In this document: in pieces, positions 1 to 51,742 of the stretch
Position numbering within the stretch: position 1 is the stretch's first letter
Layout: each line of letters starts with the position of its first letter
Assembly (NCBI GenBank): GCA_946965045.2
Contig: OX337236.1
Location: forward strand, 372,001 to 436,000
Direction of reading: 5' to 3'
Source of the DNA: Epithemia pelagica
Lineage: Eukaryota; Protista; Bacillariophyta
Length of the DNA stretch: 64,000 nucleotides
Position numbers and translations under genes: made by a program
Notes under the pieces: model-generated
Told to the model about the DNA's origin: nothing
The model's database searches: none
Seen by the model: the letters and a program-made list of their open reading frames with translations, nothing else

Positions 1-2430
1 TTGTCGGCGTACAAAAGTCACAAGACGCTCGGAGTTCAGAAATCGCCTCACGCTACCAACAAAGGTTTATATTTCGCTTTGGCTAAACGCAACGACAGTC
101 ACACAAGGACCATGGCTCGCAGTCCCTTCAACAGAACTGATGCGTGGGCATACTACCACGCTATCTACTTGCCCAGTATGTGCTACCCATTTCCTTCCTC
201 AACTATCTCGGATGCATTTTGCACAGCACTTCAACGCCAATTCAAGAAAGCTTTCTTACCCAAATATGGCTTCAACAGAAACATGCCAAACGCTGTGGTT
301 TATGGACCATCTGAACTTGGCGGGATTGGTCTTCGTACTTTATCTGTCGAACGTGGCATAGCTCAAGTCTACCACTTTCTGGCTTGTATCCGCTCCGAAG
401 GAGTTCAACATCAACTTGCATCAATCATGGTTTCTTGGGGTCAATTTCTTGCTGGCACTGGAATTCCTGTTTTAGAAGACGTGCATACAAATCTACCGCA
501 TATGGAGCCAATGCAATGGCTACCTCAGATGCGTTCCTTTCTCGCCACAGTGGATTGCCGGATTGAACTTGAGCAGACATTCGTTCCAGACCTTCAACGG
601 GAACAAGACTCTTTCTTGATGGATTTGGCCCTTGCCTATACCACGTCTCCAACCGACTTGAAATTGATTAACGCTTGTCGTCTCTACCTTGGAGTAACCT
701 TCGTCAGTGACATTTCTAGCCCTGCGGGGTCAATAATCACTCGTGCTGCATATGACGGTCGTCTGGATATTCTCACGCGGCATCGCGGCCTTATCCCATA
801 CCAACAAAGACCTGGTCCAAAATCCTGGACAAAGTGGCGTCATTTCCTCAACAGCCTTCTCAGCTCTACTCAAGATCGACGCTTGAACCGACCACTCGGT
901 AAATGGTACTTTGGTGGATCGTCTACCTTTCGGAATTGGTTGTCTTATCTCGACCGTCCGTCTTCCCGTCTTTTTGTCTCGGCCCCAAACGGTCAATGGT
1001 TAGAGTATCGCTACTATGGCATGGCCTTTTGGCCCACTACAACGTTGCATTCCTCCGTCCCACCTACTGCTTGCCCAGCTCAGACTCTGTCGACTGGTCC
1101 AGCGAAGATTTTGTCCTCAAGCCACTACGTGTTAGCGCGCCCCAGTACACCACCGCCAAGCTCTCTGAGTGAACATATGGCTCAACTGTCTTCTTGGGAA
1201 AGGTCCCTCTGTACACAGTGCACTGCTCTGTGCTCAACTGATGATCTCGCTGCTTTTCTTCAATCGAGTTCGCCACTGTTGGTTAGCAGTGACGGTTCTG
1301 CTGGTTCCTTTGTTGGTACATTTGGCTGCGTTTGCTCCACTGACACCGGACAACGACTATTTCGACTTCATGGTCCCGCGCCTGGTTACAAAACGTCCTC
1401 ATTCCGTGCGGAAAGCTATGCATTCTTAGCCATCCTACGGTATCTGATACAATCGTGCGAGTTTCTAAGCTGTTCTCTACCCATCTCTCTTCAGATGTTC
1501 ACCGATTCTGAAAGTTTGGTCAAGACGATTCAAAAACGGATGGAATGGTTCGTTGAGTTTCCGTATTCTACAATGACGGCAGATTGGGACCTACAACAAG
1601 CAATCTCTCGGTCGCTCCGACAGTTTGCAGAACTCCCTCATATTTGTCATATCAAGGGCCATCAAGATCAAGAACAAGCATACTCAACTTTACCGCTGCC
1701 AGCTCAACTCAATGTCGACGCGGATCATGCAGCATCCGATTATTCTTATCCTTCATGTGTCTCTACGTGCCTCGCACCTATAACAGCGGGATGTCACGCG
1801 TTGCTCCACAGTGCGGATGGATCTATTAACTCAAACTACCGAGCTATTCTACGCAGACTGGCTACCTTTGACACACTCCGCGACTATCATTGCACCAAAT
1901 ATGACTGGTCCGAGGCCGTGTTCGATTCCGTTGATTGGACTGCTCATGGTCGCGCATTGAATTCAAATTTTTCTCGTCGCCACTTTTTGGTAAAATTCCT
2001 CCATGATTGGCTCCCTCTGGGCTACCTGAAATCACGATACGCCGACTATTACGACGATAATTGTCCCCTCTGTTCTCATACTCTCGAGACTCGGTCTCAT
2101 TTTCTTCAGTGTCCCAACCGGGACTGGTTCGAATCTCTTGCAGAAGATCTCCGGTCGAAATGGCATGACCTTGAGTTCGATCCCTTTCTTCGGACTTTGC
2201 TTCTGGAATTTCTCCGTTCGTTTCTCCTCAATACTACCCCTTCTTTTCCTCCTTTACCTCACGCATACCAACGTGCTATTCTCTCACAGCTTACAATCGG
2301 GCAGGAGCAACTGTTTCTTGGTCGTTTCTCTTTACAATGGGCGTATCTCCAAGACGCCTACTTACAACGCGTGTCTCTCTCTTCTCCGTTCTTCTCCGGC
2401 ACTCGTATCATCACTGCTACTATCCACCTT
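1..2430 (+). mobile_element. Non-LTR retrotransposon (LINE) ORF: end of RT, RNase H domain and C-terminal CCHC-like finger; 3' end truncated
   Basis: ORF 1..2577 contains the post-RT motif 'GPSELGGIGL', RNase H motifs (SSDGS...GTFG, SSFRAE, FTDSESL, HIKGHQD, LNVDAD) and CPLC-x8-H-x3-C. From about 2430 the sequence is antisense copia pol. The 5' part lies outside the window. Confidence 0.88.
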
Positions 2431-4104
2431 GTAATCGTCGGCCTCTGGAACTCTCGTGTCTTCTTGCTCATCGTCTTCATATGCCTCGAAGAAAGGAGTA
2501 TCATTTCCTTCTTCTGCGGGATCATCTCCTTCCTCTGGGTCAAGACCTTCGAATCGGTTCCCCAGAGCTTCCTTTAGGTCAGTATCAAACTGTTCACGTT
2601 GTGCAGTAAACGACGGATCATGGGACTTTTCAACTGACAGGGGCCACACGGAAGTGCGATGGACAATCTTCCCTTTACGTGTCAGTATTTTCGAACTCAT
2701 TGCTTGACCAACCGATTTACTTGGTCCTAGCCACCTTCCGAGTTCTCTGTTCTCGAACCCGGGATTGGAATACCAGACCGGGTCATACCATCTGTGTTCA
2801 ACTAGATGGGATATGTCTGGTGTATCACCGGTCAACATCTTTATAGGTGGACCTTCATCAAACGGTTCAGTCGCAGAAGCTGTATGGGATCGTCTCTCAG
2901 CTACCAGTTGCATACAATGATCCCATAATACAGCAGGGGCGTTTGTCCTTCTCATTTCCCTTCTATAAGCCCTCTTCAGTTCGCGGATGTTCGCCTCGGC
3001 TAGATTTTGGTTTGGTGTCCAAGCCTCTATGGGCTTAATACGGCAACCAAACTTTTGGGCAGTCTTCTTGAATTTCCCACTCGTCAATTCTGGAGCATTA
3101 TCTGGGACAACACTATTGAAGATCCCATAGTCGTTAAATACCTTCTCTAGAGCCGTGTGAGCATCCTTCTTGCGTTCCAACGGATAAAATTGAACCCAGC
3201 CAAACTCGGTCGCAAAAATTTGACCACAAGTATTTTGGCTCAAAGATTTTGTATCCGAAAACAGAGTATCTGTGTATACATCTGCCCGAAGCCTTCTATG
3301 CTTAAGCTGGTAAGCCGTATGCTTGAGCCTTTTACTTCCGACGCCTTGGGAAAAATCTCTTACTCCAAGTTGCGTTGTTGCCTTGAAAGTCCTTTCCGCA
3401 ACTGACAAACCGATTCCCCATCTCGAAGCTAATCCAATGGGATCTATTGTCCCCTTTCTCTTATGGCTCGTTTCGGCTACGGTTCTTGAGTTTACTCTCA
3501 CCATCTTGGTCATTATGTTGCTCAACGACCTCGAACCTTTTGTTCTGACCATGTCTTGACGAACGTCCTGTCTGAGCCTTCTCTCATCGACATCTTCTTC
3601 AGTCGAGTCATTCGGGGCCCATTCTGGATTATCGTTGGTCATCTCAATCCTGTTCGCAGGGTCAATATTCGCTATCTCCTCCCAAGACGGTTTCCTTACA
3701 GTGAAGCCACTGATTACTCCTTTCAACTCCAGAGGGATTGTAAGTGTATTTCCATTGTCGTCGTTAATGGGAACAACTAATGAATGTGATTCACTTGTCC
3801 TTTGCTCTTGCTTGATAAACTTGAGGGGCACATCATTGACGATGATACCAGCCTCTCTCATCTGATTTGGATTCAATAGGCTCTTCTCCATCATCGGAAG
3901 ATGGAGCGCTTGGTGAAAGTACAACAGGTAAGTCTCTCCTGTCTCGGGTTCATCATATGCCAACACGCCTGTGATTACGGGAGTTTCCTTTAATTTCCCA
4001 AGCTGCGTTGAAAACCCACTCACTTCTGCCTTGTCTGTCTCATATAAAACGAGGCAATCCTTACCGAGACAACAAGTGTCAGCGTGACTGTCTAACTCGC
4101 ACAT
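2362..4104 (-). CDS. pol: copia Pol fragment (aspartic protease + GAG-pre-integrase + integrase)
   Basis: ELDSHADT protease motif; YTDT...VPDNAPE...NQNLAE integrase core; 'LGRWLG' post-core motif. The frame is open from the gag stop (4158) onward. Confidence 0.88.
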   Translation of the reverse strand: MCELDSHADTCCLGKDCLVLYETDKAEVSGFSTQLGKLKETPVITGVLAYDEPETGETYLLYFHQALHLPMMEKSLLNPNQMREAGIIVNDVPLKFIKQEQRTSESHSLVVPINDDNGNTLTIPLELKGVISGFTVRKPSWEEIANIDPANRIEMTNDNPEWAPNDSTEEDVDERRLRQDVRQDMVRTKGSRSLSNIMTKMVRVNSRTVAETSHKRKGTIDPIGLASRWGIGLSVAERTFKATTQLGVRDFSQGVGSKRLKHTAYQLKHRRLRADVYTDTLFSDTKSLSQNTCGQIFATEFGWVQFYPLERKKDAHTALEKVFNDYGIFNSVVPDNAPELTSGKFKKTAQKFGCRIKPIEAWTPNQNLAEANIRELKRAYRREMRRTNAPAVLWDHCMQLVAERRSHTASATEPFDEGPPIKMLTGDTPDISHLVEHRWYDPVWYSNPGFENRELGRWLGPSKSVGQAMSSKILTRKGKIVHRTSVWPLSVEKSHDPSFTAQREQFDTDLKEALGNRFEGLDPEEGDDPAEEGNDTPFFEAYEDDEQEDTRVPEADDYKVDSSSDDTSAGEERRRERHAL

Positions 4105-4158: not shown

Positions 4159-5637
4159 TCACACGGTCTCTCTCCTGCCTTTCTTTCTCTGGCTCATTAT
4201 GGCGCCAATACCGAGTTCCTTGTTGTTCTCACTGGAATCACCAGTTGTCTCTGAACTCTCATCGGTAGTCGTCGTCGTGCTTCCATCAACACCTTTTCTC
4301 TTGTTCTTACCGTTCTTAAAATGAACAGCAGCAGCAGACCTTTTCTTCGTACTGCTGTTAACAGCGTCTCTTGCTTCTCGGACCATTTGCTGTTGTTCCT
4401 TTGTGAGTTTTATCCACTTTCTAAAGGGATAATATTTGTTGGGGTCAAAACCGTTTGATTGGTTACTCCCATTCTTCTTGTTTCCACCTTTTCCATTCTT
4501 GTTATGCTGGATAGATGAGATTCGGGCCTTCCTTGTTGAAGCGCTGTACGAGACCTTGCTGTCAAGAATCTCTGCCAAATAATTGGAAGCGACTTCAAAG
4601 TTTGCCCTGAGTGAAGGTGTAGCGAGTATGGTGTTCTTCGCGCTTTCAAGCCTTGGATCAGATACACCCAACAATAAAACTCTAACCTTCCTTTCATTAC
4701 TGACCATCTCGCCAGTTGATTCGAGGTCCGTAAAGGCCCTCTGGAGCGATTCAATGTATCTCTCATATGTGTAGTTTCGTTTTGACCCGTCATAATAGGC
4801 CGATTCCAACACTTGGTCTGCTTTTGCCCTCAGTCTTGTTTGAAAGGCGTCGCCTAAGTAATGACTCTTTAAGGCGATATAAGCACCTCTTCCGTCTCGA
4901 CTGCGGCTAAAGGCTTGAACCCAGCCCCATTTAGGGCCATCATGGGTTATGTGGCGTATGACATCCCAAACTGCCTCTTTGTCAGCCACCGCAGTTGCTC
5001 CAGTTAGTGGCGCACGCCTGATTAGTTCTCTCAAGTACGTTGGTGCTCCGATTCTTGGGTCCAAGTTAACCGGAGGAGGAGTTGGCATCGAGCGGGTATA
5101 CGCTGCCAAAGGGATCATAGTAACTCCTCTTTTCCTCTCAAGGTAGTTGTCTAAATCTTCGAGAACAACTCGTATGTTCTCAACATTTGTGAGTTTCTCG
5201 GGAAGTTCAATCTCATTATCATACTCATCATCCGCTTCTTTAAGACGGTAGAGTCCTTGGATTTGAGCCAATGTTGCCGTTGCCGCACTAAACTCGCGAT
5301 CGACCTTATTGAGATACTGGACGTAGTACCCAAGCATCTTCAAGCGTTTTTCCAAAACATGCCCGACCAATACTCCAGGGTTCGTAATGGTAATTGGGAC
5401 TCCAGGAACTGGATTAGCAGCGTCATAGTCCGGATTAGGAATAGTTCCACCGGGTTTCCTGGCATTAGCGCAAATTTCAGCGATATCGTCTTCCTTTAGA
5501 CCATCAAAATCGCCAATCGAAACAAGGCCTTGTGCATTGAGAGCGTTACGAACTTCTTGTTGACCAATGAGGAGGGTATTCTCAAGGTAGCCATTAAGCT
5601 GAGTGAGCAGTTCTTGAGCGGTTGGAGGAGCGGCCAT
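4159..5637 (-). CDS. gag: copia Gag (diatom type)
   Basis: 492-aa ORF directly upstream of pol, with DGR.AY..L..HY.G and KVR.LL.G motifs shared with the gag at 45628. Confidence 0.8.
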   Translation of the reverse strand: MAAPPTAQELLTQLNGYLENTLLIGQQEVRNALNAQGLVSIGDFDGLKEDDIAEICANARKPGGTIPNPDYDAANPVPGVPITITNPGVLVGHVLEKRLKMLGYYVQYLNKVDREFSAATATLAQIQGLYRLKEADDEYDNEIELPEKLTNVENIRVVLEDLDNYLERKRGVTMIPLAAYTRSMPTPPPVNLDPRIGAPTYLRELIRRAPLTGATAVADKEAVWDVIRHITHDGPKWGWVQAFSRSRDGRGAYIALKSHYLGDAFQTRLRAKADQVLESAYYDGSKRNYTYERYIESLQRAFTDLESTGEMVSNERKVRVLLLGVSDPRLESAKNTILATPSLRANFEVASNYLAEILDSKVSYSASTRKARISSIQHNKNGKGGNKKNGSNQSNGFDPNKYYPFRKWIKLTKEQQQMVREARDAVNSSTKKRSAAAVHFKNGKNKRKGVDGSTTTTTDESSETTGDSSENNKELGIGAIMSQRKKGRRETV

Positions 5638-6060: not shown

Positions 6061-6075
6061 TTGGGTCTGATAAAC
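6061..6075 (-). other. Primer-binding site GTTTATCAGACCCAA
   Basis: Identical to 45400..45414, which directly follows the 5' LTR of the intact element. Confidence 0.8.
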
Positions 6076-6186
6076 CAAAATACGCGTAGGGGTGTGACTC
6101 GAAAATATAAAATTGTGACTATCTCATGCCTCAAGCTTAGAGGCCTTACTATCGCTAATTTCGCTCAATAGGCTAGCCATATTTTG
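6076..6186 (-). repeat. Inferred 5' LTR (111 bp) with inverted termini CAAAATA...TATTTTG
   Basis: Abuts the PBS and has a 7-bp terminal inverted repeat. There is no second copy in the window, so the distal boundary is inferred. Confidence 0.55.
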
Positions 6187-6444
6187 TCAATTTCGGTCAT
6201 GCGCTGTCTCGTGTCGTAGTTAGTGTCACAAAAAAGTGACTATTTCTACGTGATTTCTACACAAATGCCCAGTATACGGACGAAGTTTCTCGGCCGCAAG
6301 GCACTGTCTGTACACGTAGTACGTCATTCGCCCGTGTCTCCATCCCAGAGCCATCAAAACGTCAGCAGTCAGCAGTCGATTTCTAACCCACAAAAGGTAA
6401 GATGATGGTGGAGATGGTGTACTGAACCGATAGAGCTCCGGTAG

Positions 6445-9269: not shown

Positions 9270-9516
9270 CAGTCACCTTACAGAAACATGCGCCGGAATG
9301 AAAGTAGCAGCGAGAGTGATAGATGAAGTGCGAATGGGCAGTGGGCAGTAAATGGATGGGAAGATGGAAAACATTACCTCTGTACCTCTGTTGCTTTTTA
9401 TCGGTCTGGCTGGTCGATGTTTTTTTGAAGTACCAGTACCGTACACTACAACTGTAAGGAATTCTGCGAGTGACCATACTAACCAGTAAGATACAGTATC
9501 GTAATATCAAGAGGTG

Positions 9517-10280
9517 GTATTAATACTTCCCGGTGTCGAGTCCTTTCAAGGAGGGACCGCCCGGCGCGGAGGGTAGAATGACGAGGAGGGCAATGGTCGA
9601 GGAGGGCGCACGCCCGACAAGACAATTGCCCGTCGAGTCATTCTCCCGACAAGCCGGGCGCGCCCGACGCGAGAGGACGGCCAGACACAGGGAAGTAGTA
9701 AACTTACTCCCTATCAAGCTGTGTAGGTAGTGAGAAATTCCTGGAAGCCATGTCACAAAGTGTCACACAAGTGTCACACAAGTGTCACACACGAGAGGGA
9801 AACCGCGCGACTCGCACGAAACTACTTCCCGGTCGTACAAAAAATTCCTACTGTAGTATAAAAATGTGAGACGAACTACCTACACAGTCTGGTATGGAGT
9901 TAGTATTAATACTTCCCGGTGTCGAGTCCTTTCAAGGAGGGACCGCCCGGCGCGGAGGGTAGAATGACGAGGAGGGCAATGGTCGAGGAGGGCGCACGCC
10001 CGACAAGACAATTGCCCGTCGAGTCATTCTCCCGACAAGCCGGGCGCGCCCGACGCGAGAGGACGGCCAGACACAGGGAAGTAGTAAACTTACTCCCTAT
10101 CAAGCTGTGTAGGTAGTGAGAAATTCCTGGAAGCCATGTCACAAAGTGTCACACAAGTGTCACACACGAGAGGGAAACCGCGCGACTCGCACGAAACTAC
10201 TTCCCGGTCGTACAAAAAATTCCTACTGTAGTATAAAAATGTGAGACGAACTACCTACACAGTCTGGTATGGAGTTAGTA
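9517..10280. repeat. Head-to-tail tandem duplication (386-bp + 375-bp units)
   Basis: Units 9517..9902 and 9903..10277 appear identical except for one extra 11-bp GTGTCACACAA copy in unit 1. GTA microhomology occurs at the junctions. Confidence 0.95.
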
Positions 10281-44976: not shown

Positions 44977-45205
44977 GCTGTCAAAGTAACAGCAACAAAG
45001 GCCTGAATAATGGATGCCGGCGAAGACCCCGACAACAAGACACAAGACGAGAACAAGAGAATCTTTTTGGTGCGACAAAATGAGAGAGCAGCAAAGATGC
45101 AGCAAAGACATGCGCAAAGACACAAGATCAGACACCCATCATCATGATGTACTCTTTGCGCGACCATCTTTTTGGTGCGAGACCGGGGGGAGTGAAGAGT
45201 GCGCG

Positions 45206-45399
45206 CGAATGAAATCCACCGTGGCACGTGTGCGACAGTTAGATGGTGCGGCTGGCGCTTATTGGCGGGCCTGAGTGTGCACCTTGTTAGCGATAACCTT
45301 TATCCTAGAACCTTGGCCTTAGCGGTCACTCTTTTGCATGAAATCCTGAGTTGCACCCTAACCTGTGAGTTTACCGTATTGTACGACGTGTTTTATTCG
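45206..45399 (+). repeat. 5' LTR (CGAATGAAA...TTTTATTCG)
   Basis: Identical by eye to 51284..51477. Confidence 0.9.
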
Positions 45400-45414
45400 G
45401 TTTATCAGACCCAA
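45400..45414 (+). other. Primer-binding site GTTTATCAGACCCAA
   Basis: Directly follows the 5' LTR; identical in the other copia element. Confidence 0.8.
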
Positions 45415-45627
45415 CTTGCCAGGAAGCAATTGAGAGCCGCAACCTCGATCCATACATGCGTGCGGGTCGCATGTCGAGGTTGCGTAAGCGGGGACTTGAG
45501 CATTTGCTCACCCTAGAAAGTGTCGAGGACTGATCACCCTCGAATGTTGTCATCCCGCGACGACTGATTCTAACATGAAAACATATTGTTATTTCTTCTA
45601 TTTGAAAGTGAAAACAAATAAATCACA

Positions 45628-47064
45628 ATGGCAGCCAACGCCGACATGGAGCAAATCCTTACGTGGATCGGTTTTACCGATGGTCCCCAACGTCACCGCA
45701 TTTGTCAAGAAGGCGGTTTTGGAACGATGTCCGACTTCGTCGGTGTCACGGAAACCGATATTAGGAACATGGCCGAAAGTTTTGAGAAAAGGACGGACGC
45801 CAATGGACGCATTCTCTTCGGGATGCGCCGCATTAAATGGCTTATTGGCATTATGCACTGGGTGCAAGATTTCCTTCGTTGTTCCTTGCAACCAACCATC
45901 GCCGGCATCGCCGATGCAAACGCGTTCAAGGACGCTCTAACAACCGCCATCGATCGTGCTGAGACCCGCAAAGTGGAAGCCGAACAAGCTGACACGGTCA
46001 GCAAAGCAGCCGATCCGGGAAAGTTTAAGGATGAACGCAAGTGGCCCGATTGGGAACCCGCGTTCGTCAACTACCTTTCGACCATCCCTGGCGTAAATGG
46101 AGTACCTTTGTCGTATGTTGTCCGAGCAAATGACCAACCTGACCATGTGACTGATTTCGGTGAAGATTTCAACCGCAAGATTATCGCCTGTGCACCCTTG
46201 CATGGCACCCACTTCCGCACTGATGCGCGAAAAGTTCACCAACTCCTGAAGAACTACCTTGTCGCCGAGACCGCTGAGCAGTGGACCAAGCATCTAGCTC
46301 GTTACAGCGACGGTCGTCGTGATATGGCCGCCCTTCGTGACCACTACGCGGGCGAGGGAAACGCGAGTCGACGCATTGCGTCTGCTGACCGCATGCGTGA
46401 GAGCCTACACTACAAAAGTGAACGCTCGCTCCCTTTTACAACGTTCTTGGACCGTCTTCAGAAGATGTTTAACATCTATGAAGACGAGGGGGAGAAGTAT
46501 ACGGACGCCGCCAAGATTCGCGAGCTATTCAAGCGCGTGCAACACCCTCAGTTGCAAGACACGGTCAAGGCTCTCAAGGTTCGGTTCGATATGGACGGTC
46601 TGACCTACACTCAGGCCGCCAATCACATCGCCGCAGCCGTCAGCGAGATGCCAGAATATCAGTTGGCCCGTAAAGTGTCCTCGACGCAACGTATTCGCGG
46701 GGGAGGGTCCAGGTTTAACACACCCCAGAAATCCGGTGGAACTAAGGCGCCAAAGAGTGGAGTCCATATGCCCGATGGGACGATCTTTACCGGCTTCTAC
46801 AAGAACTGGAAAGAGCTCCCTGACGATGACAAGCAGAAAGTCATCGACGAGCGAAAGAAGAAGCAGAAAAGCGGTGGGAAACGCAAAGCATCTGAGATTA
46901 CTAGTATGGCCGAAACTCTTGTTGAAATGAAACGCCAGGTGGCGGAGTTATCTACCAATATGGCCAGTGCCACAAAGAAAGAAAACGAAGAAGAACGCGT
47001 GCCCGATGATGCCGGAAATAAGTTCGGCGGCCGCAACGAACGTGCAAATGGGAAGCGTGGGTGA
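45628..47064 (+). CDS. gag: copia Gag (diatom type)
   Basis: 478-aa ORF after the PBS with W..WE..F.NYL...G..G.PL.YV.R and DGR.....L..HY.G motifs. Confidence 0.85.
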   Translation: MAANADMEQILTWIGFTDGPQRHRICQEGGFGTMSDFVGVTETDIRNMAESFEKRTDANGRILFGMRRIKWLIGIMHWVQDFLRCSLQPTIAGIADANAFKDALTTAIDRAETRKVEAEQADTVSKAADPGKFKDERKWPDWEPAFVNYLSTIPGVNGVPLSYVVRANDQPDHVTDFGEDFNRKIIACAPLHGTHFRTDARKVHQLLKNYLVAETAEQWTKHLARYSDGRRDMAALRDHYAGEGNASRRIASADRMRESLHYKSERSLPFTTFLDRLQKMFNIYEDEGEKYTDAAKIRELFKRVQHPQLQDTVKALKVRFDMDGLTYTQAANHIAAAVSEMPEYQLARKVSSTQRIRGGGSRFNTPQKSGGTKAPKSGVHMPDGTIFTGFYKNWKELPDDDKQKVIDERKKKQKSGGKRKASEITSMAETLVEMKRQVAELSTNMASATKKENEEERVPDDAGNKFGGRNERANGKRG

Positions 47065-50000
47065 CAGTTGCCCTCCCTGCTTGTGTGGTACTTGTTTAAA
47101 TTCGTGAGTTATCTCTGTATACGAATTGTTGTACCATTTATGTCGCGAGTAGGGAGACCACGTACCATTAGTCGAATCGTATCGTCCGCAAGGTCGAGCA
47201 CTCAGCATCGTGAAAAAGGAAAAAGAAGCAGAGAAGAAATGACCGCTGGTCGTTTGGAATTTGACACACATGCGGACACGATTGTCCTGGGTGCGAATTG
47301 TGTAATCCTGTCTTATACAGGCAAGGAATGCGATGTGTCTCCGTACACCGAAACTTATGAGTCCATCAAGAATGTGCCAGTGGTGTCAGGAGCGACATTA
47401 TGGACCAATAAAACTGACGGCCAGGAATTCATCCTGGTGTTCAACGAGGCACTGTGGATGGGTGACCAGTTGGGTCACACCTTGGTAAACCCCAATCAAG
47501 TCCGGGCTTACGGCATCCCAGTACAAGACAATCCTTATAACGGACAGGAGGCATTATCCATCGCCCATCATGAGGTAACGATACCGTTTAACACGGACGG
47601 CACCATTATTTACTGCGACACAAGGACGCCGACACAAAAAGAACTTGAAGCATTGCCCCATATCCACTTGTCGTCGCCACATGACTGGGATCCACACGAT
47701 ATCAAGTTTCCCTGCGTAGACCACGATGGCGATCGCGAAGTGTCCGTTATCAGGACTGACTTTCCATTCCAGGGGACTGTCTTCGACCAAGAGGAAGTTA
47801 CAAAACGGATCGTCGCCTCCGTGCAGATTGGGGAGGCCGGATTGCAGCCAGAATTCTTTCCTCGCACTGATATTCCAGCCGAAAGAACATTCATTTCCAA
47901 AGAGAGACGTGGTACCGTCACTGCACAGTCGTTGAGCGAACGTTGGTTTATCGGTCTGTCACAAGCCAAAAAGACTTTGGCTTCGACCACACAACGAATG
48001 ATACGGTCAGCAATATTGCCCATGGCAAGAAGATACCGTGCAGACCGCATGTTTGAACGGCCCAGAATCAAGGGAGTGGTATACACAGATACCATGGACG
48101 GTCAATATAAATCTCTGGATGGTAACGGGCATGCACAGGTATTTGCAAATAAAGATTTCTTTGCGGTTGCATACCCCATCGAGAAGAAAAGTGGAGCAGG
48201 AGACGCTCTCAAACAATTCATTAGTGATTACGGGGTCCCGGATACAATCCTGTGTGATGGATCGAAAGAACAGACGGGCAAACGGACGACGTTCCGCGAG
48301 TTAGTCCGCAAGCATGCAATTGATTTGCAAGTGACTGAACCTTATCGGCACAATCAATCTAAGGTTGAGGGTGTGATTCGCGAAATCCGCAAGCGTTGGT
48401 TCCGAGTCATGCACAAACAGCGGGTTCCCCGAAGACTTTGGGACTACGGGATTCGTTGGGTCTGCGAGACCATGCAGAGGACTGCACGCATGTCAGGGGA
48501 CTTGGATGGGCGCACGAGTCTAGAAGGTCTGACCGGTGAGACACCCGACATATCTGAGTACCTCGATTTTACCTTCTATGATTGGTGTTGGTATAACGAC
48601 AACGCCGGCCTTGGCACTACAAGACTCGGTCGATGGCTAGGTGTGGCCCATAGAGTGGGTAGCTTGATGTCCTACTGGATACTGACAGAGCAAGGCCGGG
48701 TAGTTTCCCGAACTACCGTCACTAGAGTTACTACCCTTGAACAACAAGAAGCAAGTACAGTTCGTCGTTGTAATGAGTTTGATCAAGGGATCAAGGAGAA
48801 ACTGCATGATTCCGCCCATTTCATTGTCGATGGCGGCAAAACCACACCGAATGACTGGGATCTCCCGCCTCTCGATCATGACCCGGACTTCCATGCTGAG
48901 TTTCATGAAGTAGTGTCCAATGATGAGGTCAAGGAGGCCGATGAGGAGTTCACCCCGGAGGTCTTCAACGACACTTACGTGAACATGGAAGTGGCAATCC
49001 CGAAAGGGGACGAAACGCATCCCATGTTAGCACGAGTCACCAAAAGGCTACGAGATAAGGATGGTTTACCCATCGGCACGGCGCATGACAACCCGATATT
49101 AGACACCCGCATGTATGAAGTGGAATACCAGGATGGGACCAAGGCAGCACTTGCAGCCAATCATATCGCCGAGAACTTGTTTTCCCAAATCGATGACGAT
49201 GGTCATCGGCAAGTCCTGTTAGATGAGATTATCGATCATCGGACGAATGGGCAAGAAGTGAAGCAACAGGACGCCTTTGTCACGCTACGAAACGGCAACC
49301 AGCGCCGACGAGAGACCACGGTAGGCTGGGAATTGCTGGTTCAGTGGAAAGACGGGTCAACCAACTGGATCGCCTTGAAAGACATCAAGGAGTCATACCC
49401 TGTGCAGGTGTCAGAGTACGCTGTGGCATCCAAAATCTCTATGGAGCCTGCTTTCGCGTGGTGGGTTCCAAAGGTGTTGAAGAAGCGAAACCGCATCATC
49501 GCAAAGTTGAAGTCAAAATATTGGTTAAGAACCCATAAGTTTGGGATCAGGATACCCAAGTCCGTCGAGGAAGCCAAGGAGTTGGACAGAAAAAATGGCA
49601 ACACCTTATGGTGGGATGCGATCTGTAAAGAGATGCGGAATGTGCGACCAGGTTTTGAGATCTGGGAGAAATCTCAAGGGGACATCCCGATCGGTTATCA
49701 AGAAATTAAGTGCCATATCGTCTTCGACGTAAAAATGGGAGAGAACTTCCGAAGAAAAGCGAGATTTGTGGCAGGGGGACATCTGACTGAGACGCCAACC
49801 TCGTTGACGTATTCCTCAGTGGTATCCCGTGACTCCGTTAGAATTGCCCTCCTCATTGCAGCACTTAACGACCTAAACGTATCAGCATGTGACATCCAGA
49901 ATGCCTATCTGACGGCGGATTGTCAAGAGAAAATCTGGTTCAGGGCTGGACCTGAGCTAGGGTCCGAGGAAGGATCCATCATGATTATCAAGAAGGCTCT

Positions 50001-51231
50001 GTACGGGCTAAAGTCCAGTGGTGCGGCATTTCGGGCCCACCTAGCTGAAACGCTTTATGACATAGGATTCAAGCCATCTAAAGCAGACCCTGACTTCTGG
50101 ATGAGACCAGCGGTGAAACCAGATGGGTTTAAGTATTACGAATACGTTCTATGCTATGTGGACGATCTACTGGCTATCTCACACGACTCGAAGCGAGTGT
50201 TGCAGCGTGTCCAGGCCGTATTCAAGTTGAAAGATGATAAGATAGAGCCGCCGGATATGTATCTTGGTGCTCAGCTTGGAAAGATGGATTTCGACGGTAT
50301 AAATGGATGGTATATCTCCTCGGAGAAGTATGTTAAGGCCGCTTTGGAGAATATCGAGAAGCAGTTAGCAGAGAACGGGCAGAGACTACCCACCAAGTGC
50401 AAGACGCCCTTCACTTACGGGTATCGTCCAGAGAATGATACAAGTCCAGAGCTCAAGGCCGACGGGATTCAAAAGTTTCAGGAACTGATCGGCATATTGC
50501 GTTGGGCAGTAGAGCTGGGACGTGTCGATATATTGCTCGAGACCTCCATGTTATCGACACATCTATCTGTGCCACGAGAGGGGCATTTGCAACAGGCGTA
50601 TGCAATGTTCGGGTACTTGAAAGCTAATCCAAAGCGCAGATTGTTCTTTGACCCAAGTCATCCGGATATTGATGAGCGATCATTTGCAGAATATGACTGG
50701 TATGACTTTTATCGTGATGCGAAGGAACCTATTCCACCTGACATGCCAGAACCGCGCGGGCATTCGGTATCAACCCATTGCTTCGTGGATGCGGATCATG
50801 CGAGCAACAAAGTCACTCGCAGGTCGCAGACTGGTTTATTGATGTTTGTAAATCGGGCACCGATCACCTGGTATAGCAAACGGCAGAATACCGTTGAAAC
50901 CAGTACGTTCGGGAGTGAATTCATAGCAATGCGGACAGCCGTGGAGCACATCGAAGGGTTGCGATACAAGTTGAGGATGTTTGGTATCCCGATCGAGGGG
51001 CCAACGAATGTTTTTTGTGACAACGAGGCAGTCTTCAAGAATGCATCGATTCCGGATTCGACATTAAAGAAGAAGCATACATCGATTTGTTACCACAGGG
51101 CCAGAGAGGCCGTGGCAGCGAGGACCATGAGAGTGGCCAAGGAAGGAACGGCAACGAACTTGTCGGACTTATTCACAAAGCCGTTGTCAGATGAAAGAAG
51201 GGATTTCTTATTGAAGCGGTTCACTTACTGA
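47065..51231 (+). CDS. pol: copia Pol (protease, integrase, chromo-like region, RT, RNase H), in frame with gag
   Basis: LEFDTHADT; YTDT...CDGSKEQ...E; KARFVAGGH, DIQNAYL, KALYGLKSSG, YVDDLL; FVDADHA, STFGSEF, FCDNE, DLFTKPL. Confidence 0.95.
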   Translation, partial: QLPSLLVWYLFKFVSYLCIRIVVPFMSRVGRPRTISRIVSSARSSTQHREKGKRSREEMTAGRLEFDTHADTIVLGANCVILSYTGKECDVSPYTETYESIKNVPVVSGATLWTNKTDGQEFILVFNEALWMGDQLGHTLVNPNQVRAYGIPVQDNPYNGQEALSIAHHEVTIPFNTDGTIIYCDTRTPTQKELEALPHIHLSSPHDWDPHDIKFPCVDHDGDREVSVIRTDFPFQGTVFDQEEVTKRIVASVQIGEAGLQPEFFPRTDIPAERTFISKERRGTVTAQSLSERWFIGLSQAKKTLASTTQRMIRSAILPMARRYRADRMFERPRIKGVVYTDTMDGQYKSLDGNGHAQVFANKDFFAVAYPIEKKSGAGDALKQFISDYGVPDTILCDGSKEQTGKRTTFRELVRKHAIDLQVTEPYRHNQSKVEGVIREIRKRWFRVMHKQRVPRRLWDYGIRWVCETMQRTARMSGDLDGRTSLEGLTGETPDISEYLDFTFYDWCWYNDNAGLGTTRLGRWLGVAHRVGSLMSYWILTEQGRVVSRTTVTRVTTLEQQEASTVRRCNEFDQGIKEKLHDSAHFIVDGGKTTPNDWDLPPLDHDPDFHAEFHEVVSNDEVKEADEEFTPEVFNDTYVNMEVAIPKGDETHPMLARVTKRLRDKDGLPIGTAHDNPILDTRMYEVEYQDGTKAALAANHIAENLFSQIDDDGHRQVLLDEIIDHRTNGQEVKQQDAFVTLRNGNQRRRETTVGWELLVQWKDGSTNWIALKDIKESYPVQVSEYAVASKISMEPAFAWWVPKVLKKRNRIIAKLKSKYWLRTHKFGIRIPKSVEEAKELDRKNGNTLWWDAICKEMRNVRPGFEIWEKSQGDIPIGYQEIKCHIVFDVKMGENFRRKARFVAGGHLTETPTSLTYSSVVSRDSVRIALLIAALNDLNVSACDIQNAYLTADCQEKIWFRAGPELGSEEGSIMIIKKALYGLKSSGAAFRAHLAETLYDIGFKPSKADPDFWMRPAVKPDGFKYYEYVLCYVDDLLAISHDSKRVLQRVQAVFKLKDDKIEPPDMYLGAQLGKMDFDGINGWYISSEKYVKAALENIEKQLAENGQRLPTKCKTPFTYGYRPENDTSPELKADGIQKFQELIGILRWAVELGRVDILLETSMLSTHLSVPREGHLQQAYAMFGYLKANPKRRLFFDPSHPDIDERSFAEYDWYDFYRDAKEPIPPDMPEPRGHSVSTHCFVDADHASNKVTRRSQTGLLMFVNRAPITWYSKRQNTVETSTFGSEFIAMRTAVEHIEGLRYKLRMFGIPIEGPTNVFCDNEAVFKNASIPDSTLKKKHTSICYHRAREAVAARTMRVAKEGTATNLSDLFTKPLSDERRDFLLKRFTY

Positions 51232-51283
51232 ATGACATCGGGGCGAATTTATGAGAACGCAGGTCTCATATCTTCGAGGGGAC

Positions 51284-51477
51284 CGAATGAAATCCACCGT
51301 GGCACGTGTGCGACAGTTAGATGGTGCGGCTGGCGCTTATTGGCGGGCCTGAGTGTGCACCTTGTTAGCGATAACCTTTATCCTAGAACCTTGGCCTTAG
51401 CGGTCACTCTTTTGCATGAAATCCTGAGTTGCACCCTAACCTGTGAGTTTACCGTATTGTACGACGTGTTTTATTCG
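51284..51477 (+). repeat. 3' LTR
   Basis: Identical to the 5' LTR; preceded by a polypurine tract. Confidence 0.9.
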
Positions 51478-51742
51478 CGCGGGGGAGGAAGGTTACATAG
51501 CATGTCGCTAAAAGGATGGCATCCTCGATATACTGACAGAACACAAATAGCGTACACGGACAACTGTCATCTCGTCATTACGGACATTCTGGGTTTTGGT
51601 TGTTCTCACAAGGAGTGTTGAAACTTCGATCCCCTCGAACCATGGTACAAACATGCATTGCATCACCACGGCGGGGCTGCAACATAACATACACAATCGC
51701 CCAAACAGCAACAAACAACGCTAGCAAGAACAATCAAGTCTC

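Follow-up and report, generated by a model that had tools for sequence, protein, structure and literature searches.

A putative primer binding site matching the anticodon arm of inosine-edited tRNA-Ile in Ty1/copia retrotransposons of diatoms

Two Ty1/copia elements in the window

The window, that is the whole stretch of 64,000 nucleotides that was analysed, comes from a raphid pennate diatom. Among named proteins, the host's Ria1/EFL1 homologue is closest to the one in Epithemia clementina (64% identity), with those in Seminavis, Mayamaea and Nitzschia next. Two Ty1/copia retrotransposons are found in the window. Element 1 (45206-51477) is a complete Ty1/copia element with both LTRs, and its features are as follows.

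45202..45205, no strand: left target-site duplication CGCG, 4 bp, repeated at 51478-51481
45206..45399, plus strand: 5' LTR, 194 bp, with the ends 5'-CGAAT...ATTCG-3', 100% identical to 51284-51477
45400..45413, plus strand: putative primer binding site with the sequence GTTTATCAGACCCA; it complements tRNA-Ile positions 40-27 and has the C at 45406 opposite position 34
45628..47064, plus strand: gag ORF, 478 aa, with an in-frame TGA at 47062-47064; 26% identity to the gag of element 2
47068..51231, plus strand: pol, 1387 aa, protease-integrase-RT-RNase H, in the gag frame, with RVT_2 at aa 872-1097
51276..51283, plus strand: polypurine tract GAGGGGAC, directly 5' of the 3' LTR
51284..51477, plus strand: 3' LTR, 100% identical to the 5' LTR
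51478..51481, no strand: right target-site duplication CGCG, matching the left copy

The Pfam RVT_2 match in the pol of element 1 has an E value of 1.9e-19, and a Pfam search with its gag gave no match. The gag and pol of element 1 share a reading frame and are separated by one TGA codon (47062-47064). This arrangement suggests that pol is expressed by stop-codon readthrough and not by frameshifting.

Element 2 is on the minus strand and is only partly inside the window. Its 3' LTR and the remainder of its pol were read from the rest of the contig (ENA ERZ21939226, ctg1327l; called L312 here).

6187..6190, no strand: target-site duplication TTGA (element strand), 4 bp, with the second copy beyond the window
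6076..6186, minus strand: 5' LTR, 111 bp, with the ends 5'-CAAAATA...TATTTTG-3', 100% identical to L312 7078-7188
6062..6075, minus strand: putative primer binding site, identical to the site of element 1
4159..5637, minus strand: gag ORF, 492 aa; tblastn with the gag of element 1 gives 26%, E = 1.8e-15
2422..4104, minus strand: N-terminal pol (protease-integrase); tblastn gives 30% to aa 64-579 of the pol of element 1
1..2421, plus strand: LINE-like non-LTR retrotransposon, 3' portion, inserted into the pol of element 2, outside the mechanism proposed below

The 3' LTR of element 2 (L312 7078-7188) lies beyond the window. Its pol has a weak rve match at aa 311-364 and is broken by the nested insertion, with the RVT_2 remainder at L312 7325-9814, also beyond the window. 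The LINE-like insertion is 7.7 kb long (window 1-2699; L312 9587-17881) and encodes an ORF1 of 711 aa and an ORF2 of 1856 aa with weak Exo_endo_phos and RVT_1 matches. It is flanked by a 278-bp direct duplication of pol that is 100% identical (window 2422-2699; L312 9587-9864). This is unusually long for a target duplication, and the LINE-like ORF2 runs 156 nt into the repeat. Elsewhere in the window, positions 9511-10280 hold two pairs of tandem-like direct repeats. The copies of one pair, of 270 nt, are 99% identical and separated by 386 nt; those of the other, of 137 nt, are 100% identical and separated by 375 nt. The adjoining 449-aa ORF has conserved counterparts in MMETSP transcriptomes.

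Both elements have the anatomy of Ty1/copia retrotransposons: an RVT_2-type RT with the integrase upstream (in element 2 with the weak rve match), LTRs, a target-site duplication, a candidate primer binding site that follows the 5' LTR and a polypurine tract ahead of the 3' LTR. The initial annotation had called the two elements unrelated. This was mistaken, as they align by tblastn with 30% identity in pol (540 aa) and 26% in gag (288 aa). The polypurine tract motif of element 1 also precedes the 3' LTR of element 2. The two are classed here as diverged members of one copia clade because of the 26-30% identity of gag and pol together with the same polypurine tract, LTR ends and 4-bp duplications. 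Since the LTR pairs are 100% identical in both elements, these are recent and probably active copies.

Target duplications in Ty1/copia elements are more usually 5 bp. Seven LTR pairs from the window and from relatives were compared, and all start with C, end with G, have GAGGGGAC upstream and are flanked by 4-bp target duplications. A 5-bp duplication with an LTR ending in ...TTC was considered for these elements and is ruled out by the seven pairs, which set the duplication at 4 bp and the LTR end at G. Among the relatives, the 4-bp duplications are found in L001, L002, L309 and L310 and the polypurine tract motif before the 3' LTR in L002, L309 and L310. The LTRs of the clade (elements 1 and 2, L001, L002, L309 and L310) have C(G/A) at their start and (C/T)G at their end in place of TG...CA, and they carry short terminal inverted repeats (CGAAT/ATTCG, CAAAATA/TATTTTG).

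The site shared by the two elements and its conservation

The sequence GTTTATCAGACCCAA has two exact copies in the window, at 45400-45414 on the plus strand and at 6061-6075 on the minus strand. There are no further copies with up to two mismatches in the whole window, where 0.15 would be expected by chance. The initial annotation placed both 15-mers directly after the LTR, and this is borne out by the LTR pairs that fix the boundaries of elements 1 and 2. The identical stretch common to both elements is 16 nt long, GGTTTATCAGACCCAA (45399-45414; 6076..6061). In both, the site begins directly after the 5' LTR and the first G of the GG is the last base of the LTR. This terminal G is found in both LTR copies of element 1. 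Because the first G belongs to the LTR, the primer binding site proper is 14 nt long (45400-45413 and 6075..6062). The fifteenth base of GTTTATCAGACCCAA, an A, varies among relatives. If the LTR-terminal G (45399) is counted, the complementarity of element 1 to the tRNA described below is 15 nt and reaches C41.

A search with the pol of element 1 found 539 relatives. Those that are about 60% identical lie on environmental contigs of about 6.3 kb, and one relative clusters with a protein of Fragilaria crotonensis. Conservation of the site was studied in the relatives with an intact 5' end (L001-L014 and L309-L310), in all of which GGTTTATCAGACCCA follows the LTR. This sequence is invariant in at least nine distinct elements with about 30-83% pol identity from differing assemblies and samples. 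Its flanks vary, with c, t or g on the 5' side and a, g or c on the 3' side. Across the relatives, complementarity to the tRNA stops after 15 nt. The base opposite tRNA position 34 is C in at least 10 distinct copies; a degenerate one (L310:7490) has T there.

Some variation was seen within the site as well. The variant GGCTTATC at L002:8192 would pair with G39 in the tRNA. Further variants were seen among L003:17296, L310:15163 and L310:14705 (minus strand), namely AGTTTATCAGACCCA, adjoining other LTR-like ends, and GGTTTATCAGACCCG. One diatom assembly (ERZ25042306) has several different elements with the same site. The Fragilaria crotonensis copy (L308) is without the 5' LTR and primer binding site region, and the site cannot be read in it. 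A scan of viral contigs for the site gave random or tRNA contexts only and no copia element.

The site matches the anticodon arm of tRNA-Ile(AAT)

The reverse complement of the site, UGGGU-CU-GAU-AA-ACC, reads as the anticodon arm of a tRNA. The initial annotation had parsed it in this way from the letters of the site, and real tRNA genes were found to carry the arm. JGI metagenome contigs were scanned for TGGGTCTRATAAACCCA, which gave at least 120 loci, and tRNAs were called by ARAGORN. At least 91 tRNA-Ile(AAT) genes with the exact arm TGGGTCTAATAAACCCA were called, in at least 65 distinct gene bodies. A run of T residues (TTTT), typical of RNA polymerase III genes, follows 61 of the 90 listed tRNA-Ile(AAT) genes, and G26 is present in 85 of these 90.

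Of the 297 tRNAs predicted on the scanned loci, the nuclear-type tRNA that best matches the site is tRNA-Ile(AAT). It fits at 14 of 15 positions over tRNA positions 27-41, in the anticodon arm and not at the CCA end, and the one mismatch is at position 34. The site is thus complementary to tRNA-Ile 27-40 (41) except at 34, where its C stands opposite a genomic A. A C is the base expected there if position 34 is inosine. The duplex predicted with G as a proxy for I34 has an energy of -25.0 kcal/mol, compared with -18.6 kcal/mol with A34. The initial annotation had reasoned that AAT genes with this arm would favor inosine and GAT genes direct pairing. With either A or G allowed at position 34, AAT genes dominate, with at least 91 against two GAT genes among the matches listed.

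Other tRNA primers were considered. Priming from a tRNA 3' end is rejected, as the initial annotation had also held: with CCA added, none of the 297 tRNAs has a 3' end closer to the site than 7 mismatches in 15. The base before the GG is c, t or g, so there is no conserved TGG and the block is therefore not a CCA-end site. Priming by a half of the initiator tRNA-Met is likewise rejected, as the best tRNA-Met match has 5 mismatches.

The tRNA genes and diatoms

At least two of the contigs with the AAT gene, L077 and L069, are assigned to diatom nuclear DNA by the proteins that they encode. L077 has two tRNA-Ile(AAT) genes with the arm and a Tim17 protein, which clusters at 90% identity with proteins of Leptocylindrus. 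L069 carries the commonest tRNA-Ile(AAT) gene type with a PAM68-like protein alongside, and the best named relatives of this protein are all from diatoms (Thalassiosira and Skeletonema, about 58-60%). ARAGORN called tRNA genes neither in the window nor in about 150 kb of flanks (L001, L002). Element and tRNA gene were never found on one contig; copia elements are absent from the contigs that bear the tRNA, and no overlap in host genes ties these contigs to the genome of the window. The link between site and tRNA is drawn from the tRNA genes of other diatom lineages.

Small-RNA data are available for P. tricornutum. Ile-AAT is listed in the small-RNA/tRNA read table, which has no Ile-GAT entry and may be incomplete. 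The small-RNA study describes D-loop/anticodon fragments for nine tRNAs, and the Ile-AAT row of the table is not flagged among them.

A proposed mechanism for priming and the alternatives

The block is judged very likely to be the minus-strand primer binding site of a diatom Ty1/copia clade, where its partner would be the cytoplasmic tRNA-Ile(IAU). Within the anticodon arm of this tRNA, the pairing region would span positions 27-40, and C41 as well when the G at the end of the LTR is included. Because this region lies inside the tRNA, with the 3'-OH at 40/41, a cut in the anticodon stem would be needed. The cut would fall in the 3' strand of the stem, and the 3'-OH of the resulting 5' half at position 40 or 41 would prime reverse transcription. 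A primer end at position 40, which the initial annotation had put forward, agrees with the LTR boundary, though the LTR-terminal G could pair with C41.

In eukaryotes, ADAT2/3 converts the AAU anticodon of tRNA-Ile to IAU by deamination. Inosine forms a pair with C, and reverse transcriptases read inosine as G. In this host the A34 of the gene would presumably also become inosine in the mature tRNA via ADAT2/3. The C in the primer binding site would then be the partner of I34, and it would also be the base written opposite inosine, because plus-strand strong-stop synthesis copies the primer back into DNA. The C may thus fit either selection for I:C pairing or direct copying of I as G.

The length of the site may also be explained by a modified base. 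Complementarity ends exactly before G26. This base is possibly m2,2G26, which would act as a reverse-transcriptase block that sets the length of the site, comparable to m1A58 in retroviruses. The determinants of m2,2G26, a modification that blocks reverse transcriptase, are present in the tRNA-Ile(AAT) genes: the pairs G10-C25 and C11-G24 and a variable loop of 5 nt.

The initial annotation had offered two primers, an I34-edited tRNA-Ile(AAU) and a rare nuclear tRNA-Ile(GAU). The first is supported by the genes described above and the second is not, as the GAT genes found are phage- or organelle-like. A genomically encoded tRNA-Ile(GAU), whether rare and nuclear or from mitochondria or plastids, would pair with the site at 15 of 15 positions without editing, and tRNA-Ile(GAT) genes with the exact arm do exist. 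Two were found among the metagenome matches listed (L072:1215-1286 and L082:4316-4389) and two more in viral contigs. However, the L072 and L082 genes lie inside dense arrays of five and nine tRNA genes, L072 having 38% GC, and they are probably of phage or organelle origin and not nuclear. Among the matches listed, AAT is the anticodon of 91 of the 93 nuclear-type genes that have the arm, and the absence of Ile-GAT beside Ile-AAT in the P. tricornutum table points weakly in the same direction. To our knowledge, organellar tRNAs are out of reach of cytoplasmic virus-like particles. No tRNA-Ile(GAT) gene with the arm was found in the genomes of 185,579 prokaryote species (same pattern, 50 matches). 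A GAU primer is accordingly considered very unlikely. The same prokaryote set has three tRNA-Ile(AAT) genes with a eukaryote-type arm on contigs of bacterial or archaeal MAGs (among L258-L307), which are probably eukaryotic contamination of the bins.

It could also be argued that the block is kept for packaging, dimerisation or protein binding and that its likeness to tRNA-Ile is coincidental. This is highly unlikely. The block is at the exact canonical position of a primer binding site in every copy, and it agrees with one tRNA arm at 14 of 15 positions with the sole difference at the edited base and of the type that editing predicts. The probability of such a match by chance is roughly estimated at less than 1e-3 for about 3000 tRNA 15-mers, and the same arrangement is documented in Bianca elements (PMC6317226).

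Least probable of all, and extremely so, is that the block is not a tRNA site but serves self-priming as in Tf1 or pairs with an RNA 3' end ...UGGGUCUGAUAAAC(C): self-priming is known in other LTR elements (PMC6317226) and in element 2 the block is preceded by TGG, which might imitate a CCA-end site, but self-priming is rejected because a complement of the site of at least 6 nt is absent from the LTRs of both elements, the TGG and the tRNA 3' ends fail as described above, and a search of the window for Rfam families was empty.

Priming by an edited half of tRNA-Ile is therefore the reading retained here. It is possible, but rather doubtful, that such I34-edited half-tRNA priming is old or has evolved repeatedly and links the Copia elements of diatoms, plants (Bianca) and fungi, with a site that would track the arm of the host tRNA, a length set by the m2,2G26 stop and a C that is an imprint of inosine. 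If this were true, as a shared or recurrent trait, the sites could record tRNA wobble editing and the evolution of tRNA arms across eukaryotes.

Comparison with known systems

The anticodon arm of plant tRNA-Ile differs from that of diatoms, and the sequence of the Bianca primer binding site would therefore be expected to differ from the one described here. Among 260 Bianca Ty1/copia elements of plants, 92% carry a site that is complementary to an edited 1/2tRNA-Ile, and A-to-I editing at the first anticodon base was explicitly invoked (Neumann et al. 2019, Mob DNA 10:1, PMC6317226). The inference of an inosine-containing primer is thus supported but has already been published for Bianca. The diatom elements resemble Bianca in a putative edited 1/2tRNA-Ile site and also in size and gene layout, as Bianca elements are about 6.1 kb long and have gag and pol as separate reading units (PMC6317226). 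They differ in their hosts, which are land plants for Bianca and diatoms here, and in their target duplications, which are 5 bp in Bianca and 4 bp in the diatom elements.

Priming from the anticodon loop of tRNA-Ile-AAT has also been described for the rust-fungus Copia-18_PHord and the non-autonomous Helenus (Kojima 2024, PMC10886601). The likeness to the primer proposed for the diatom elements lies in the use of this loop, whereas the host is a fungus and inosine is not mentioned (PMC10886601). Half-tRNA priming as such was shown for Drosophila copia and inferred for yeast Ty5 (PMC5371799); the primary reports are given as Kikuchi 1986 and Ke 1999, as cited in PMC10886601. Like the primer proposed here, the copia and Ty5 primers are 3'-truncated tRNAs that end in the anticodon stem/loop, and the primer binding site lies directly after the 5' LTR without a TGG. 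However, copia and Ty5 use the initiator tRNA-Met (anticodon CAU) and no edited base is involved. The fungal FunCo1 has an internal tRNA-Lys site (Donnart et al. 2017, PMC5445492).

The Ty1/copia elements of diatoms were divided into CoDi groups by Maumus et al. 2009, where primer binding sites were not analysed (PMC2806351). The elements described here share with them a diatom host, and a pol relative is found in Fragilaria crotonensis. CoDi3.2, 4.2 and 4.3 have LTRs without TG/CA ends, and a 4-bp duplication was reported for Blackbeard (PMC2806351). A text search of a collection of papers for the site and arm sequences found nothing relevant.

What is new is the diatom host group, a conserved diatom-specific site that matches the arm of diatom tRNA-Ile, and the exact boundaries of the site. 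The abundant Copia elements of diatoms had primer binding sites that were previously undescribed, and the conserved signature of 14-15 nt can be used to annotate such elements in diatom genomes and marine metagenomes. The site also provides indirect, sequence-level evidence that diatom tRNA-Ile(AAU) is I34-edited and cut in the anticodon stem. No new kind of mechanism is opened by these findings; the little-known mode of half tRNA-Ile/inosine-34 priming would be extended from land plants and rust fungi to diatoms.
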